From: Oculina patagonica
Lineage: Eukaryota
Assembly: GCF_052425735.1 (NCBI RefSeq)
Contig: NC_135763.1
Location: 36,022,001-36,086,000, forward strand
Direction of reading: 5' to 3'
Length of the DNA stretch: 64,000 nucleotides
In this document: in pieces, positions 10,719 through 19,731 of the stretch
Numbering within the stretch: position 1 is the stretch's first letter
Layout: each line of letters begins with the position of its first letter
Translations under genes and position numbers: made by a program
Notes under the pieces: model-generated
Told to the model about the DNA's origin: nothing
What the model saw: only the letters and a program-made list of their open reading frames with translations
Database searches by the model: none

Positions 10719-13700
10719 ATGTCTCAACAGTCTTCTTCGCAGACGTCCAATTGCTCACTTGAGCCAATTTTATCTCAGGAGACTTTTGACCAGGTCTTCT
10801 CTAGCGTCCATGGAATTTTCGACAGTCAACAAGACTTTAACAGGTAAAACTGCAGCACACGCTAAATAAGATATTAATATCAAAAATTTGAATGTTTAAA
10901 ATACGTCAGAGCTTTGTCAAAACAACAAGACCCCATAAAATGGTATGATCTTAAATTGAGTGGAGGGGGGAGGGGTGGGAATGGGAAATATATTTTGCCC
11001 AAGTGGACCTTTTGCAGTGATAAACCTGAATGTGAGGTTCAGAATGTGATACCAATGATGTCGGCATTGAAAGAAAAAAAAATATAGAATACTTTATGGA
11101 AAGTGCGCCCGTACAGTATTTACACACAAGCTGGTGAAGTATCAGAAAACAAACGAGTGAGCTGTGCGAACGAGTTGAGATTTCTGATACAAACCAACTC
11201 GTGCATAAATACTGTACAAAGCACTTTCCATGTGGTATTGGGTTTATTATAATTTTATACGTACTGAGATTGTCATTGAATTCATTGAATGCCCCATTTA
11301 ATGAACAATTGACCCAAAACTTTAAAGCAATGTATGAAGCTAAATTGGAATTTCCAGAAGGGTGGGCAGGGTTCGCACACGCCTTGAAAGTCCTTGAAAG
11401 TCCTTGAATCTCAAAATAAAAATTCAAGGCCTTGAAAGTCCTTGAAATTGGTTTTCGGTCCTTGAAAGTCCTGGATTTTTTATTGAACGTCAAAAGGCAA
11501 TGAGAAGACCGCAAAAATAAGCGATTTATTTACTTCTTCAGCAAGGACATCAACCGTTGTTTTGGGGTAAATTTCATGAAAAAAAGTCCATGAAATTTCC
11601 AAGAAGGGTCCTGGAAAGTCCTTGAAAAGTCCTTGATTTTTTGGCCTGAAAAAGTGTACGAACCCTGGGTGGGGGGGGGGGGGTCATAGAGCAAATCCCT
11701 TCCGTGGGGGGGTATGGATATTTTCTGGGACCACACATTGTATATTCTCTCAAACGTTCTTGTGAGACCTTGTGAGAGGTGCTACCCAACACAGGTAATT
11801 TACGATGTCAGTGTAACTACTGACAGTATAGGTTTTGTATTTTTTAGGATACAAACTGAGTGTCAGATGGCGCCAACAATTATTCAACTAACTGATGAGA
11901 ATATACACGGTATGTGTGACGTATATGCAGGGCGTCAAATTGCGCCTAATACAGGCGCCAATGCGACTAAATTTTTCACTTTGGCGACCAAATCCTGAAA
12001 GTTGGTCGCCAAATTGGCGACTAGGATCATATAATCGACCTCAAATCGCATCGGATCACTTAATTTATCAAAAACTGCATAACTCGTAAAAAAATCGCAC
12101 AGGGTGAGCAAAGTACAAAATAACTTCTTGCTTTATCTAAAGATCTTACATTTCAGCTAAATATATTAGTTTTGAAGGTTATTTACCTGTCCAAAACTGT
12201 AAGAATACATCTGATATGGTTTGCAATCGAGCGTTGCTATTTTGGGCAGGCAACTTCCTATTACACTTTCAACTTAGCCACACAAAACAGCCACACAATG
12301 AATTTGCTTTCTATCTTTGCTCTTTGTATTGTATTGAAGTTTACAAGGAAAAATGGTTCAACTCAAAATGTTTAAATCCATACATGAAGTCAAAAGCATC
12401 GGCAAACGACTGTCAAACATTGTGTAGTGCTCGTTGCGTACATGACACGTGCGCCTATTTTGACGCGGTCAGCGGTTTCATCTGGTACTTCATGTAATGT
12501 CACCAAAAGTCTTCCTAGTTCTTGTGCACAAAAAGCCATTCAAGATTGAAATAAATGCAAATGTGATGAAAATAATCTATTTTAAAGGGTCTATCTAGTA
12601 AAACGACAAAATGAGAAGTGTTTTATTTCTTTTTTAAAAAAATGGCGACCAAATTTTTGGAATTGGCTACCATTTTGGCATACTTAGGAGCCAAGTGGCT
12701 ACTGGGAAAAAAAGTTAATTTTACGCCCTGATATGTGTGCCTGACCAGTGTCAGTGTCATGATTATGTGAATGAATTTAATCATGAATTCAATCAAAATA
12801 TTTGTGCTTAAAGGGGCTAGGTCCCAGTATTTTAGGAAATTCTATTTAATGTCATTAATTTAGAGCTCTTAACTTCAAATTGGCAGAGCAAAAACTTGTC
12901 TTTTTTTGCCAAAATCACGACCACATTACAAACAAGGATGGTTTTTGAGCATTGTAAATGACACTTTAATACAAATTGAGATAAAAAAGTTGGGCCAACG
13001 TTTTTCAAGCTTAGCCAAATGCAATGGGTTTTAATCTAATCAAATTTTGCCCATCCATGCCGCTGTTTGGCCTTTCTGTGTTTCTTTTGAGTTCTTCTAC
13101 AGTTTTAAGCCGTTATTGTGACATTCAGTTAATTCTATAACCAGTTGGTCAGAAATTGCCTAAAATTGCAGGGAATTAATAAAACAGGATTTTTTAGGCA
13201 TGAAACAGGGTTCGAAACTTGCGACCTTGTCAATCCAGTAGGCAAGTGCTAACTTAATTTCCATCCCGCGATGAATGGCATCTTTTGGTTGGTACCTAGA
13301 CCTTGTGTGGTTGTTACACATGTACATCTGTATTATAAATTATATTTATTTACCAGTACATGTGAACTGCATGTGCATGTAGATTAATTCAATCTTGTGT
13401 GATTTCAGAAAATGTGGAGATGACCTTGAACTGTGTAGGTGTCATGAGGCCGGAGGTAAAACACTTTCGATGCTTATAATATGTTATTTGAATCGTCTTT
13501 ATATAGTATCAAGTCAACATTGCCTCTTTTAAGTGGCCAATCAGCTTGCCTGTCTACAGTGCTGCCAATAACAGTCGGTCATCGGACACTGGCCGACCAA
13601 AATTTGTTCATGTCTGACAAAATCCCAAGTGTGGTCAGACATGATGTCCGGAAGGTAAATCATTTTACGGTAACAATGAATAAAATTAAACCTTTTGGAT

Positions 13701-16700
13701 TTAGTGATGTCCAACCAAAATTTTGTTTTGTTCGACCATGATGGTGTCTTAGTAGGACATATATGTCCTTTCAAGTGAAAAAAATTATTTGCAGCCCTGT
13801 GTCTATAATGTCTAATTTATTTTTTCTCAACAGGTTGAATTTCCCCCATTTATGCCAGACCATAGCTTTAGAATAGATCTCAAGCAAGAACCTACATGTA
13901 GTACATCTTTCAAACGAGAACCAGTCGACAATTCGAGATTCATCTCATCTACGATGACCACACCACCCCCTGAACAGCCTATTCCGCAGCCCTTAATAGT
14001 GTGTAATACTGATTTCCCCGGCACGTATGGATTTGACTTGGGCTTTGAGGAAGAGAAGGGTCCCGTGACCAAGTCAGTGCATTGGACGTACTCTCCAGCC
14101 CTAAAGAAACTGTTTGTTAAAATGCGGTGTATTGTTCCCCTTCGGTTCCGCCTCCAAGGTAAGAAGATCATGATTATATTTTTTATTAAATATTAATTTC
14201 TCCTCTTTTGTACAATTCTCATTTCTGTGCCTTGTAAATGACTTCCACGTTTTCTTTGTTGCAGTTTTTCCCCCAGCTCCTGGCTTCTATGTAAGAGTTG
14301 TTGTGATTTATAGACAGCCGGACCATTATAGGGAAATTGTTGAACGGTGCCCGAACCACATCACAAAACACAAGGATGGTTAGTTTTCATTTTCTTGAAT
14401 CTCGACTTACATGTACTTCTTGAGATGCAAAGGGTGTAAAGGAAAACAGAATTCCTAGGGTGCCCTTTGGGCAAGTGTGCAAGCCATTGTGTGCTAGGTA
14501 GAAACTAGCCTAGCCTTACTTAATGCCCTTATTTGATGGGAAAAAATAATACATATCGCCCAGCAAGCAGGCCATTGATCAATAAAAATTATATCCCTCT
14601 AGCCACTGGCTTTTGGACAATATACACAGTGTATATTTACATTATGCACTTTCTTTGCATGCTGACATAGTATTTCAGCAGTGAAGCAGGTCTCTTAAGC
14701 TTATAGAGTCAGTGTGTAATTCTACTGGTCCTCTAGTATAGCAGTTGGTGTTGTGTTTGTGGCTAGGGGAATAATATTGTTCCTGTTAGTTAGTCTATAT
14801 GTATGTCTTAATACATTATATTGTACATGGAAATCACATCTAGATTTACTGTTGTTTTCAGGCCATCATGCACCAAAACATTTGTTGCGTTGTGAAAATC
14901 CCAGAACAGATTATGTCACCTGCCCTGAAACTGGGAGGCATAGTTTAAAAATACCTCTGGAGGCACCTCAGGGTAAGTCTGAATCTCAATCAGCACTTTT
15001 TTGTTTGGAAACAAGTTTAATTTTTAGCTTGCCCTACAGACAGTTGTCAAAAGTGTGATTGCCATGGGTAGTTGCACGCTTGTCATAGGTTAGCCCATCC
15101 TATGGGATGATCCAGCCCAGGATTGATGATCCAAGATCAGTCAGACTATGGTACATGAATTGAACTGATGAATCCACTCTGGGCAAGGATTCATTGGAGT
15201 CTTTGATCATCCCAAATGAATGCACCCTTACTATGCAGACAGCTTGCAATTTCCTGGGCCCTTGTGCAATAGAAAGTTTCTTTCCCAGTTGACAGGTCTG
15301 CTTGTGGATGACAAGAAATTTTTTTTCAAGTTCCAAAACAGTGAAAGACAGAAATTCAGAAGCCAATAAGGAATATCCACACAAATACATGTATATAGAA
15401 CTCCTTAGTAATGTCTGAGCAGTGTAATATTCATATCTCAGTGTAATATCTCACATCTCAGTGGATGTTGGACTCAGCCATTGTTTTATTACTTAATTCT
15501 TGTTCATTTGACTTTATATTTTGTAGCTGGCAGTGACTTTGTGACAAACATGTTTCAGTTCATGTGCTTCAGTTCATGCCCTGGGGGTTTGAATAGACGA
15601 CCTATCCTTGTGGTTTTCACACTGGAGTATAAGTAAGTCTTGGGGTAGAATATGTTATAGCCTTACACTTATAATTATTTTGAACTCTGTAAGTGTACAT
15701 GTAGGTAATGCATGTAACTCTGCATGTAGGTAATGTATTTTGAATTCCTTGTTTTCCAGCAATATGGTATTGGGAAGGAAAGCGCAAGATATACGCATAT
15801 GCGCATGCCCTGGGAGAGACAGAGGAATTGAGGAAAATGCCGAAGCAAAACGACAGTCAAACCAGCCAGCAGCAACTGCCGCCAACCCTCAAACTCCAAA
15901 TGTGACTCCGCCCCCTACCCCTCAGATATCATCAACCCCTCGCACTCCTCCTCCCGAGGAGCCAACAACATCCACTGGTGCAGAAGAAACAAATCATGTT
16001 CAAGTACCGAAACTAACAAAAAAGCGATGTAAGTGTGGAGTTCCATGTACATTTCCAAAAGGTAAAGGCTGTAGCTTAAAGCGACCTACTCTCCCTGGAT
16101 GAGAGGCTACACGTACATGTAGTCCATCACAGGGTACCCCGCAGAATTTTGTCTGGTTGGCCTAGCAGTTTTCTACTGTCTTTAAATACCCCTGCGTGGA
16201 GAGAGGCAGTAGTATGCTCAGTGATCTATAATGTTTGTTTACCAATTGTAGGACTTGTTTTGAGCTTTGTGGTATGTTTAGAGAAAAAAACAAAACAGAT
16301 TGATTGGCAGCAAGGCTGGTACAACGGGAGGAGGGCAAGATTTATTGGCCCATATTTCAACTAGAAGACTAGCTCTGCTAGGTGAAATATGGGCCAATAA
16401 ATCTTGCCCTCCTGCCGTTGTACCAGCCTTGCAATCAATCTGGTTTTATTAGCACTTAGAGTGACGTCTGGACGTCTGGTACGAGCATTTCTTGACAAGA
16501 GATCCGGCAGCAGACTAGCCAAGCAGTTTTTTCCTTCACTGCGTGGTCCCCTGCATCCAAACAGTTTTTGTTTAGAGAGTTTTACCATGTGGCATTTTTG
16601 TGTGCAGAAAAATAATTTGAGTTGTGGTATCCTGTCGACCTAGAAACACAAATGTTTGAAACCCAAATTTCCATCTGAAAATACCTTAGTACATCCATGT

Positions 16701-19700
16701 TAAATTTTGCCCCCAAACTCCCCTAGGGCTAAAAGCATATTCTTAGTGAGTTGATTCTTTTTATCCTATTTCAGGGAGTGTCAGTTTTAATAACCACATT
16801 CTGAATTAGCCACTTTCATGCTAACCTTATTCTGTTTAATCTTGTTTGAATCCTCAGCACATTCCATCATGTCATCTGGTTTTGAGGTCAGGTCATTATC
16901 AGCTAATCGGATGAAACGAATGAAGACTCATGAAGATGAGGAGATTTTTACAATACAGGTTGGTTATATCTTAGTTAACAATTTTGTGGAAAATATAATT
17001 ATTCACTTGGTCCTGTTCAGTTTAATGGTTTGAAGTAGACAAGAAGTCGCAGAACTCTGTCTCTTAGGGGTGTTTTTTTTTTCACAATTCTGGAATGAGA
17101 ATGGCCAGAATGTGAAATGTGCATGTTTTTCTATTCCACATTTCTATTTCGTAATGGACAAAACGCCATTCCTTCCATTCTGCTCCCAGGGGCAGAATTA
17201 ACAGAATGTTGCGAATGAAAATCAAAGTTGGCTGGTAGAAGGCATAGCCCGTGATTTGACGGGATGTGTCTCCTCTCCTTTGCAAAAAGCACTGCCAGAA
17301 CATTTGGCAAATCCACAAGACTCCATACTTCTTTTCCTCTTCTTAGAAAAATTGCTGTAACTTGAGTCTGTTTTTCCTTTGTTGCAGGTTAAAGGTCGTG
17401 ACAAATATGAGATGCTCCTGAAAATTAAAGAGGGTCTGGATATTATGGACATGGTTCCACAAGCACAAATAGATAATTACCGTGCAAGGTGAGTCTCTAC
17501 ATTCAGAACTACTGATGTAACATTAATGCAGAATTTGTGCATCTTTGGCCCTTAAAATACATTTTTGTCAATGCACATACATTACATTTCAGCGAAAAAT
17601 AATTAAATTGTACCAGAGGTTTTGCAAGATTTCTTCAATACAGCATGATTTGCTAATATGGCCTTTAACGTTTTCATTGAATCCTTGTTTTGAATTCTCT
17701 TAGATTGAGCAGTAAAAAGTACTCACCATAAGGCACCTTGTCCCGGAATAAAATCCTTCCCCTGCAAGGGGCAGGGGCGGATACCCCCCAAGCCTCCTGT
17801 TGAGGGTCCATAATAGGCTTCGGCAGTCCCCCATCCCGCCACCCTTTTTAGCCCTTATCCCACCCATTTTGATGAGTTTGATCCTACATCCTGCCCTCAA
17901 TTTAAGAATATCCCACATCCCACCTAGCAAAAAGAACACATCCCAGTCCCGCCAAGACAATTTCATCCTGCCACTAAAATATTGGTATCGGGGATTCCGC
18001 CTTGATTTTAAGCCTTATCCTGCATCCTGCCAGACCTATGTTCCTCCTTGGTATCCCCAAACTTACACGACTTGGGACCCTCAGGACCTATAGCAGCAAC
18101 TTCTAGTGGTATCTCTGTGATCTGAAGCTTCAGAACAAAAACAAAGCAAATTCATGTTTTTCTTATGACATTTTTATGAATTAAACTGTGCCACTGATAA
18201 ATGATTTATTTTGTTGAAACCAACAGCTGCCCCCCTTGTGGGAGATTGACGAGTTCCAGGTCTTCACAAAGAGAGAATTCTCAGAATGTAAATTCACAAA
18301 ATTCTGATTCACAAATCTCTACAGATTCTCAGCCAGTAGGTCTTCTTTTGTCTTTTTACTTCCTGGCTATAACTCTAATTCTTTTGTTAAGTGTGTTGGT
18401 TGAAATAAGGTACCGTAGTTAAAATTCATGAGGCTTTGTAACTAAATGATTTTATTATTGGTTTACTGGTCCACTGGTATTTTGTATTGTTAATTGGTTA
18501 ATGTTATTATTGATTGGCTGACTGACAGACAGACAAACAGATGGACAAATGTGCAGGTCTGTCTTACTAACAGTCTGAGTATACCTAGAACAAAGAAAAT
18601 CCTGCCAAATGTGGTAAAACATTCGTGTACAAACTCTTTGATATACAAGAAATTGGAAGACAATTATTTTGGATTGTGATGATATAGTACAAAATACCAA
18701 AGGTGAAAATAGACAACATTATGCAAAAGCTAGTACGCCGTAAAATTCTGGTTATAAGCCCCCCACTTTATAAGCCCACCCCCCGGTTATAGGCCCATCT
18801 TTCTGGGAAAAAAATACAATACATCCGATTATAAGCCCCCCGGATATAAGCCCCCCTTTGCCGGATGATAGTACTGAAAAAGGCTAAATGTTGCTTTTTT
18901 ATGCGTTTTTAACTTAATACCGTATTTTGATCAACACTCCTGTGGCTCTTTTCGAAACGTTTTTTTTCATTCCGCTTTTTAGCCTTCCCAGATTGCATTT
19001 CACATAAATTTCACATTTTCCACTAAAAAAGGGGCAGTAGCCCAGAAACGTATATGTTTCCATCGTTTGGGGTTCCTTGGAAACATTATACTACCATCAG
19101 GCGCATTTTTCATTTTCATTTTAATTATCGTTTCAATTCTCCCGGAATAGCCCCTCTGTATAAGCCCACCCAAAATCCCTTACGAAGTTGTATAAGCCCA
19201 CGGCTTATAACCAGAATTCTACGATATGTAGTAATAATTATCAGCCCAAACACCTGAGGCAAGATAGATACCTGAATTCTGAGCACAGTAACTCCAGTCA
19301 GTGTCACGCCCAGCTCTTCTCTTGTAGCTTCACTTTCTCATGTCTTGAAATTTATCTGTTATCTGGGGTACATTTCATTGGTTTCTAGTTTGTGCTAAGT
19401 TTATTAACAATAAAATCAGCACAAACTAGAAACCAATGAAAATGTACCACATGTACCATTATCACAGTAGTGTGTGACCTTATTGCCTGGATGGAAGTAT
19501 ATCACACTCAGAATTCAGGGTTTAAGTAGTAAATTTATTAATCATCTGTTGTCATAGGATGAACTGGATGGTACTCCACCCATTTCTCAACTTTCGCGCT
19601 CAGACTCTGGCTCCTCGTACCAGTCTCCCACGTCCTCCCAGCAGAGTTCTGGAGGAGGGACTGGGATCAATGCTGTCAGATTTACCCTGAGACGAACTGT

Positions 19701-19731
19701 GTCATTAGACAAGAAGGGTTTCCAGCAATAG
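10719..19731 (+). CDS. TP63: p53/p63/p73-family transcription factor (TAp63-like, no SAM domain), 12 coding exons, 547 aa
   Basis: Exons 10719-10843, 11848-11909, 13409-13455, 13834-14158, 14265-14378, 14862-14972, 15527-15632, 15760-16028, 16858-16958, 17388-17488, 18227-18335, 19558-19731. All GT-AG, phases consistent, 1644 nt total. TA: [13 protein letters not shown]: [63 protein letters not shown]. Tetramerisation: [40 protein letters not shown]-terminus: [12 protein letters not shown]. The symbol denotes the pre-duplication p53/63/73 homologue. Confidence 0.95.
11084..11240. mobile_element. Palindromic MITE in p63-like intron
   Basis: TACAGTATTTACACACAAGCTGGTGAAGTATCAGAAA is mirrored by TTTCTGATACAAACCAACTCGTGCATAAATACTGTA. 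Confidence 0.6.
11367..11667. mobile_element. hAT-like MITE with 6-bp TSD, nested in an older repeat
   Basis: TIR CAGGGTTCG/CGAACCCTG, flanked by GGTGGG on both sides. Internal AAAGTCCTTG repeats. Confidence 0.75.
11928..12730. mobile_element. hAT-like non-autonomous element with 5-bp TSD
   Basis: TIR CAGGGCGT/ACGCCCTG. TSD ATATG. Subterminal TGGCGACCA repeats. Confidence 0.75.
13557..13799. mobile_element. hAT-like MITE with 6-bp TSD
   Basis: TIR CAGTGCTGC/GCAGCCCTG. TSD TGTCTA. Confidence 0.7.
16296..16443. repeat. Near-perfect ~70-bp-arm palindrome (foldback MITE) in p63-like intron
   Basis: GCAAGGCTGGTACAACGG..GGAGGGCAAGATTTATTGGCCCATATTTCA is mirrored by TGAAATATGGGCCAATAAATCTTGCCCTCC..CCGTTGTACCAGCCTTGC. 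Confidence 0.85.
18738..19224. mobile_element. Tc1/mariner (Tc2/pogo-like) MITE
   Basis: TIR CGTAAAATTCTGGTTATAAGCC / GGCTTATAACCAGAATTCTACG. Internal TATAAGCCC repeats. Confidence 0.75.
19271..19519. mobile_element. Foldback MITE
   Basis: Ends CCTGAATTCTGAG/CTCAGAATTCAGG. Central palindrome CATTGGTTTCTAGTTTGTGCT...AGCACAAACTAGAAACCAATG. Confidence 0.7.

Follow-up and report, generated by a model that had tools for sequence, protein, structure and literature searches.

A SAM-less p63/p73-type gene of the stony coral Oculina patagonica carries candidate elements of the TAp63α autoinhibitory latch

The stretch of Oculina patagonica DNA analyzed here (64,000 nt, positions 36,022,001 to 36,086,000 of contig NC_135763.1; hereafter the window) contains on its forward strand a gene of the p53 family, whose 12 exons join in frame between 10719 and 19731. 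The resulting frame of 1644 nt (547 codons and a stop) opens with the ATG at 10719, closes with the TAG at 19729-19731 and has GT-AG boundaries at all introns. Apart from an 11-residue insert that stems from an alternative donor, 546 of its 547 residues are identical to RefSeq XP_078373715.1 of the same species, which is annotated as 'cellular tumor antigen p53-like isoform X2'. Exons 4 to 8 match consecutive parts (positions 2-192) of the p53-type DNA-binding domain PF00870, with E values of 9e-12 to 2e-4. They are followed by a tetramerisation domain (16935-16958 and 17388-17486; PF07710, E 2.2e-13) that is of the p63/p73 type with a second helix. An earlier note on this DNA, made from the sequence alone, had described the domain in this way, and both the Pfam match and the helices predicted by AlphaFold2 agree with it. 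Its interface residues I433/L437/M440, within KIKEGLDIM, are identical to I378/L382/M385 of the vertebrate proteins; here and below the vertebrate reference is the TAp63α of bird and frog (P0099, P0102, P0105), numbered in register with the human residues of Coutandin et al. 2016.

No SAM domain was detected by Pfam in any exon, and none is present in the precomputed Pfam assignments of any cnidarian orthologue. A tblastn search of the window with the SAM-bearing C-terminal halves of six homologues found no SAM relic either and matched only the tetramerisation domain and a C-terminal TI strand, so that the gene is indeed SAM-less, as the earlier note had stated. Judged by its sequence, it is the orthologue of Nematostella nvp63, an ancestral-type p63/p73 factor from which the SAM domain has been lost. 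The peptides that the note had cited for TA1, T1, T2, the tetramerisation domain and the last exon were each found at the positions it gave.

The three N-terminal elements TA1, T1 and T2 are encoded by the first three coding exons. An hhalign comparison of the N-termini of nine cnidarian and three vertebrate proteins gave an E value of 7.2e-6 with all three elements in register, pairing TA1 with TA1, APTIIQLT with QPIDLNF, and the coral T2 with NKIEISMDCVRVQ. The cnidarian N-terminal profile also aligned to a single bird p63 (E 9.6e-5), and against the p73 N-terminus, of which only one was tried, nothing aligned (E 0.35). The claim that T2 differs from the vertebrate IEISMDCI by a conservative replacement at every position was reproduced residue by residue: the hydrophobic face I50/I52/M54 corresponds to V65/M67/L69 of the coral, and E51 is retained as E66. 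The TA1 contacts F16/W20/L23 correspond to F23/F27/V30, which is conservative but not identical. After T2 an RPE(Q)xEF pattern is conserved in corals, and the acidic cluster D61/D63/D66 is matched only in part, by R76/E78/F81 with an extra glutamate, E80, giving two acidic residues and one basic residue.

The last exon encodes a serine ladder, a Gly-rich spacer and the TI strand. For the cnidarian and vertebrate p63 C-termini, hhalign gave an E value of 1.9e-8 over the segment that runs from an L-x-R-x-x-S site through the TI strand, and tblastn with bird p63 matched the strand itself (19666-19707). The identity to vertebrate p63 that had been claimed for this strand holds for its VRFTLR core, with V603/R604/F605/L607/R608 corresponding to the identical V530/R531/F532/L534/R535. 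The ladder consists of L502-S-R504-S-D-S507 followed by S510, S513 and S516 at +3, +6 and +9, and the residue at +12 is a glutamine. Sites of the L-x-R-x-x-S type conform to the CHK1/CHK2-type consensus. All stony corals examined have, ahead of the TI strand, this predicted CHK2-type priming site followed by the CK1-type +3/+6/+9 consensus. When the 45 residues preceding the TI strand were shuffled with their composition preserved, a strict L-x-R-x-x-S with three Ser/Thr at three-residue steps arose in 0.135% of the shuffles.

The distance from the priming serine to the TI arginine varies little across taxa: it is 24 residues in Oculina patagonica and 24 to 27 among stony corals. It is 22 in vertebrates, 23 in hemichordates, 23 to 25 in echinoderms, 24 in amphioxus, 27 in the brachiopod Lingula, 28 in a bivalve, and 17 in Nematostella, which has two serines only. 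A search of the PDB sequences with the last exon returned a chance antibody match only, the TI region being in no solved chain, and a search with the C-terminal region returned stony-coral p53-family proteins only and no further lineages.

The exon chain was examined with contigs assembled from four public RNA runs of three studies, which skip the introns at GT..AG and cover the joints of exons 1 to 8. Spliced contigs from four runs each support the joints 10843|11848, 11909|13409, 14972|15527 and 15632|15760, and those from three runs support 13455|13831. The joint 14158|14265 is likewise present in spliced contigs, and 14378|14862 is bridged by one contig of run X6, in which exon 5 is spliced on both sides. 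Exons 2 and 3 (62 and 47 nt), the least certain members of the earlier chain, are therefore spliced in, because the contigs show their joints. A single 1467-nt contig spans exons 4 to 8, and its remaining 515 nt equal exons 9-12 plus 30 nt; exons 9-12 otherwise follow the RefSeq models and contigs of transcript length from other corals, in which the same C-terminus is encoded. The possibility that the runs were DNA was rejected, since the contigs skip introns at GT..AG. The contigs also extend upstream of 10709, and at least one non-coding 5' exon must therefore be present.

One boundary differs from the exon chain of the earlier note, the rest of exons 1-8 being confirmed. In the RNA contigs and in RefSeq isoforms X1 and X3, exon 4 starts at 13831 and not at 13834, which adds a CAG and hence one glutamine just after T2; the extra glutamine at the exon 3/4 junction is also present in other corals. 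The canonical AG acceptor of this exon is at 13833. The added codon may reflect a non-canonical AA acceptor in the assembly; alternatively, position 13830 may be polymorphic (A/G), with the G allele giving rise to a tandem CAG|CAG acceptor. Table 1 lists the exons together with the other features discussed.

Table 1. Exons of the p63/p73-type gene and further features of the window (coordinates in the window).
Feature	Start	End	Strand	Content
p53 response element	8548	8567		Spacer-less
p53 element with E2F-like sequence	8548	8580		
Exon 1 (first coding)	10719	10843	+	TA1, residues 18-30 (10770-10808); weak Pfam P53_TAD, E 0.033
High-depth intron stretch	11196	11741		
Exon 2 (62 nt)	11848	11909	+	T1 (TA2A) strand, residues 50-59 (11870-11899)
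High-depth intron stretch	12834	13197		
Exon 3 (47 nt)	13409	13455	+	T2 (TA2B) strand, residues 63-75, then R76-P77-E78
High-depth intron stretch	13562	13925		
Exon 4	13834	14158	+	Linker and start of DNA-binding domain; Pfam P53, E 6e-7
Exon 5	14265	14378	+	DNA-binding domain; Pfam P53, E 8e-7
High-depth intron stretch	14654	14835		
Exon 6	14862	14972	+	DNA-binding domain; Pfam P53, E 2e-4
Exon 7	15527	15632	+	DNA-binding domain; Pfam P53, E 9e-12
Exon 8	15760	16028	+	Pfam P53 match; alternative donor at 16061
Alternative extension of exon 8	16029	16061		33 nt, RefSeq X1/X2
Exon 9	16858	16958	+	Linker and tetramerisation-domain beta-strand (from 16935); kept in orthologues
Exon 10	17388	17488	+	Both tetramerisation-domain helices; Pfam P53_tetramer, E 2.2e-13
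CPPCG motif	17487	18242		S/T-C-P-P-C-G, residues 454-459
Exon 11	18227	18335	+	CPPCG motif (cnidarian-conserved), then Ser/Gln/Asn-rich linker
Read-through of exon 11 donor	18336	18419		RefSeq X4
Exon 12 (last)	19558	19731	+	Serine ladder (19591-19638), Gly-rich spacer, TI strand (residues 527-540, 19666-19707), stop

The elements are not peculiar to Oculina patagonica. TA1, T1, T2, the tetramerisation domain, the CPPCG motif, the ladder and TI are conserved in Acropora, Montipora, Porites, Stylophora and Pocillopora and in one JGI transcript, with the consensus LSQETF..VF for TA1, AP....LTDE for T1 and EN.E..L..V.V for T2. Several of these orthologues come from transcript assemblies, and transcript-length contigs of five other corals encode the N- and C-termini. 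A library search with exon 4 returned mostly exon fragments, together with the full-length Acropora transcript P0006, which led to the rest of the family. The earlier note had made its reading depend on conservation in other corals, and every element is kept across the six or more stony-coral genera examined.

The layout recurs in Nematostella nvp63 (P0082), where more residues are substituted and most of the elements are conserved. The two proteins are 48% identical over 478 aligned residues and share the TA, the DNA-binding domain, the tetramerisation domain with its second helix, CPPCG, a Ser-rich tract, a C-terminal TID and the lack of SAM. They differ in the ladder, which has four serines at a vertebrate-like 24 residues in the coral and two serines at 17 in Nematostella, and in the TI strand, where the coral is nearer to vertebrate p63 than the Nematostella strand (AVRFSLKRTVTY) is. 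Whereas nvp63 is known from experiments, the coral protein is known here from sequence and prediction.

Beyond the Cnidaria, the TA1-T1-T2 N-terminus and the C-terminus with ladder and TI-like strand were found in the p63/p73-like proteins of Saccoglossus, Glandiceps, Ptychodera, Branchiostoma, four echinoderm classes, Lingula and bivalves. All of these have a SAM domain, placed by the Pfam listings between the tetramerisation domain and the ladder, where the coral has none. The same N- and C-terminal elements occur without SAM in a sponge, Corticium candelabrum, which has a 454-residue family member with TA1-, T2- and TI-like motifs. In Trichoplax the TI strand stands at the extreme C-terminal end; this placozoan shows TA1 and TI only, and no serine ladder was found in its homologue. 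Outside the animals, Syssomonas and two choanoflagellates have a TI-like C-terminal strand after SAM, and Syssomonas also has a T2-like N-terminal strand. The C-termini of the unicellular holozoans aligned to the metazoan TI profile with an hhalign P of 8.5e-5, a value that we discounted; as a lead to a strand pair older than animals it is weak, because the windows had been pre-selected by a TI-like pattern before scoring. No relatives were found for P0072, a SAM-less protein of 507 residues with a TI-like end.

Two more p53-family loci were found in the Oculina patagonica genome (C14:19610927-19612266 on the minus strand and C6:34709687-34711932 on the plus strand), where tblastn with the p63-like protein as query matched the DNA-binding domain only. 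Neither a tetramerisation domain nor a TI strand was detected within about 10 kb of these two loci, and the gene described here is thus the only one of the three with both elements detectable. Nematostella likewise has three p53-family genes, which the three coral loci parallel.

With vertebrate TAp63α the coral protein shares, in the same order and with similar spacing, TA1, T1, T2, the tetramerisation domain with its I/L/M interface and second helix, a CHK2 consensus, a CK1 ladder in +3 steps, and TI. It differs from TAp63α in lacking SAM and the Gln-rich extension of the second helix. Only 7 residues follow its TI strand, compared with about 27-30 in vertebrates, and the vertebrate tail ending in KEE is missing. 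Deutsch 2011 and Tuppi 2018 are said to deal with the closed-dimer oocyte checkpoint of vertebrate TAp63α.

Structure prediction with AlphaFold2 was carried out on the RefSeq isoform of 558 residues, with an alignment of 27 sequences that included vertebrate p63. In the numbering of that isoform, the model has a helix at 20-35 (TA1), strands at 52-58 (T1), 61-75 (T2) and 537-551 (TI), and the two tetramerisation-domain helices at 435-453 and 456-465. The predicted local distance difference test score (pLDDT) reached block values of 66-69 at the latch elements (about 69 for T2, 67 for TI) compared with 30-45 in the flanks. As a control, bird TAp63α modelled on the same sequences gave a helix at 13-22 and strands at 33-37, 48-60 and 595-607 with similar confidence, and the two proteins thus have the same predicted secondary-structure signature. 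No strand was called in the tetramerisation domain, whose own strand requires a second chain, and therefore the TI strand must have its partner within the monomer. From the paired-strand assignment and the equal strand lengths in output that came without contacts, we infer that this partner would be T2. For the human protein, AlphaFold2 monomer models recover the T2-TI pairing (PMC9091270). A complex of two copies of residues 1-82 and two copies of the segment from the tetramerisation domain to the C-terminus, predicted by ESMFold2 without alignments, had a pLDDT of about 30 and a score of 0.00, values that count neither for nor against a closed dimer.

On the strength of these alignments and models we consider it somewhat probable that coral p63 is held as a latent dimer similar to that of TAp63α and is opened by CHK2-type and CK1 kinases after DNA damage. 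The TI strands of two chains would form an amphipathic sheet with the T1/T2 strands, as in TAp63α, and the hydrophobic face of this sheet (V65/M67/L69 and V530/F532/L534) would cover the tetramerisation interface I433/L437/M440. TA1 would occupy the site of the second helix, and the protein would thereby be kept as a latent dimer. Upon DNA damage a CHK2-type kinase would phosphorylate S507, after which CK1 would phosphorylate S510, S513 and S516. The phosphates would then repel E78/E80 beside T2, the sheet would open, and the tetramer formed would bind DNA and bring about germ-cell death.

Several observations weigh against this proposal. The charge latches are not conserved: R595/R598, the arginine latch, is Gly/Thr in corals, and hhalign places Asn opposite both D601 and the charge partner D55. 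D61 is replaced by Arg and D66 by Phe, and in TA1 W20 is replaced by Phe and L23 by Val. The fourth CK1 site is a glutamine in the coral; human p63 requires its third CK1 site but can do without the fourth (PMC9091270). The relay is also not uniform within the Anthozoa, since Nematostella has only its two serines at the shorter distance from the TI arginine. The AlphaFold2 strands were of moderate confidence, with vertebrate p63 in the alignment, and the dimeric state proposed for cnidarian p63 is a prediction from sequence. Moreover, p73 has a TI-like strand without a closed dimer, which indicates that the strand alone is insufficient. Because full-length nvp63 bound DNA and transactivated in SAOS-2 cells (PMC1964547), any inhibition may be partial. 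The earlier note had ascribed the 'whole' TAp63α switch to this gene. All the linear elements that it listed are real, spliced and conserved, but with R595/R598, D61, D66, D55, D601 and the fourth CK1 site not conserved, that wording was slightly overstated.

In another reading, TI is autoinhibitory without any dimer-to-tetramer switch. The coral protein would then be a constitutive tetramer like TAp73α, its TI strand would dampen activity by masking TA1 or recruiting a co-repressor, and the serine tract would modulate this gradually. In vertebrate TAp73α the tetramerisation domain is of the same type and likewise has a second helix, and a strand much like TI lies near the C-terminus, yet the protein is an open, constitutive tetramer (PMC9091270). 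The absence in corals of R595/R598 and of part of the acidic cluster fits this reading as well, as does the finding that nvp63 lacking 34 C-terminal residues (ΔC34) is only more active than a full-length protein that already binds DNA and transactivates (PMC1964547). However, what distinguishes p63 from p73 is the N-terminal T1/T2, in place of which TAp73α has a second transactivation motif, and the coral N-terminus aligned to p63 and not to the single p73 tried. Both T2 and TI retain their hydrophobic faces and the tetramerisation domain its I/L/M interface, and the ladder, which in vertebrate p73 is broken after the priming serine, is kept in stony corals. We therefore regard a constitutively tetrameric coral protein as rather unlikely, although it deserves serious consideration.

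Alternatively, the likeness of the motifs to the latch would not mean autoinhibition, and they could instead act, for example, as a degron, as a signal for nuclear transport or as the place where a ligase or kinase docks. The elements are short and lie within disordered regions of low complexity, and in vertebrate p63 the stability of the protein is also influenced by the TI region. We consider this explanation improbable, since the order, the spacing and the amphipathic pattern of three separate elements are maintained between sponge and vertebrates, the AlphaFold2 model shows T1, T2 and TI as paired strands, and the C-terminal deletion raises the activity of nvp63 (PMC1964547). Finally, part of the exon chain could be an artefact, with a small exon or the last exon lying outside the main transcript. 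The RNA contigs were examined over exons 1-8, RefSeq isoform X4 reads through after exon 11 and so lacks TI, and the junction that adds a glutamine implies a non-canonical AA acceptor in the assembly. Against this stand the joints of exons 1-8 seen in the four runs, the fit of the leftover of the 1467-nt contig to exons 9-12, and the same N- and C-termini in the transcript-length contigs of five other corals, which together make an artefact very improbable indeed.

Should the latent dimer be the correct reading, the distribution of the elements bears on the history of the family. Tentatively, and with somewhat less conviction than a probable conclusion would call for, we propose that the animal p53 family started out with the complete TAp63α latch, which would act in cnidarians as a SAM-free, damage-triggered switch from dimer to tetramer, and that p73 and p53 are derived, unlatched forms. 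In this view the latch can also be recognised in the sponge, in the placozoan (TA1 and TI only) and in every invertebrate deuterostome and lophotrochozoan sampled. That the strand pair itself may predate animals is weakly hinted at by the T2-like and TI-like strands of Syssomonas and the TI-like ends of the choanoflagellates.

The RefSeq isoforms add two variants of the coral protein. Use of the alternative donor at 16061 inserts 11 residues before the tetramerisation domain in X1 and X2 and changes the junction residue from Ser to Ala; in the RNA contigs exon 8 ends at 16028. In isoform X4 (530 residues) the exon 11 donor is read through, adding a 28-residue hydrophobic tail that ends at a TAA stop, and the protein has neither serine ladder nor TI strand. 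X4 may be an isoform that naturally lacks the latch, its effect resembling that of the C-terminal splice variants of vertebrates.

Other features of the locus were noted. The CPPCG motif follows straight after the second helix, was found in all cnidarian orthologues aligned there, and occurs in neither the sponge nor the bilaterian proteins; its CxxC pair, predicted to lie near the oligomer axis, may serve in metal binding or redox sensing. A perfect spacer-less p53 response element, GGGCAAGTCT GGGCATGCCC, stands about 2.15 kb upstream of the ATG, directly followed by the E2F-like TTTCCCGCC. It is the only match with at most one mismatch in the window, where 0.16 would be expected, and at least one such match appeared in 16 of 100 shuffles. 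The predicted element may be an autoregulatory site near the 5' exon. Four intron stretches (Table 1) had very high summed depth with many short, mismatched contigs; these are dispersed repeats that are expressed or present elsewhere in the genome and lie outside the gene proper.

Part of this picture has been in the literature for some time. In Nematostella, Pankow and Bamberger (2007, PMC1964547) found that the ΔC34 deletion raised reporter activity and that the TID is inhibitory. They also found that nvp63 is activated by ultraviolet light (UV) and expressed in early gametes, with RNA interference evidence that it takes part in the gamete death induced by UV. Joerger et al. (2014, PMC4155161) described the Nematostella tetramerisation domain as p63/p73-like, and Coutandin et al. 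(2016, PMC4876613) demonstrated that the human closed dimer can do without SAM. Two points, the TI part and the independence from SAM, had thus already been published, and the novelty is smaller than the earlier note implied. The choice between closed p63 and open p73 is made by N-terminal residues 2-69, which contain T1 and T2 (PMC9091270), and conservation of the phosphorylation sites (PAD) has been stated only 'from fish to mammals' (bioRxiv 10.1101/681007). In the literature that we searched, neither the T1/T2 strands nor the CHK2/CK1 ladder had been reported for organisms other than vertebrates. Aberg et al. (2017, PMC5543598) reported that cnidarian p53-family genes have lost the TAD and that sponges are without the family. 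Contrary to this, the coral TA1 aligns to that of p63, and Corticium candelabrum has a family member.

A 2022 review named the conservation of TAp63α autoinhibition in the germ-cell-guarding p53 proteins of invertebrates as an open question (PMC9091270). The coral gene and its alignments provide residue-level predictions by which this question can be tested directly in a protein that lacks SAM by nature. If the latch works as proposed, spring-loaded germ-line quality control by p63 would predate the split between cnidarians and bilaterians, and it would also be relevant to the way in which corals remove damaged gametes when stressed by UV and heat.

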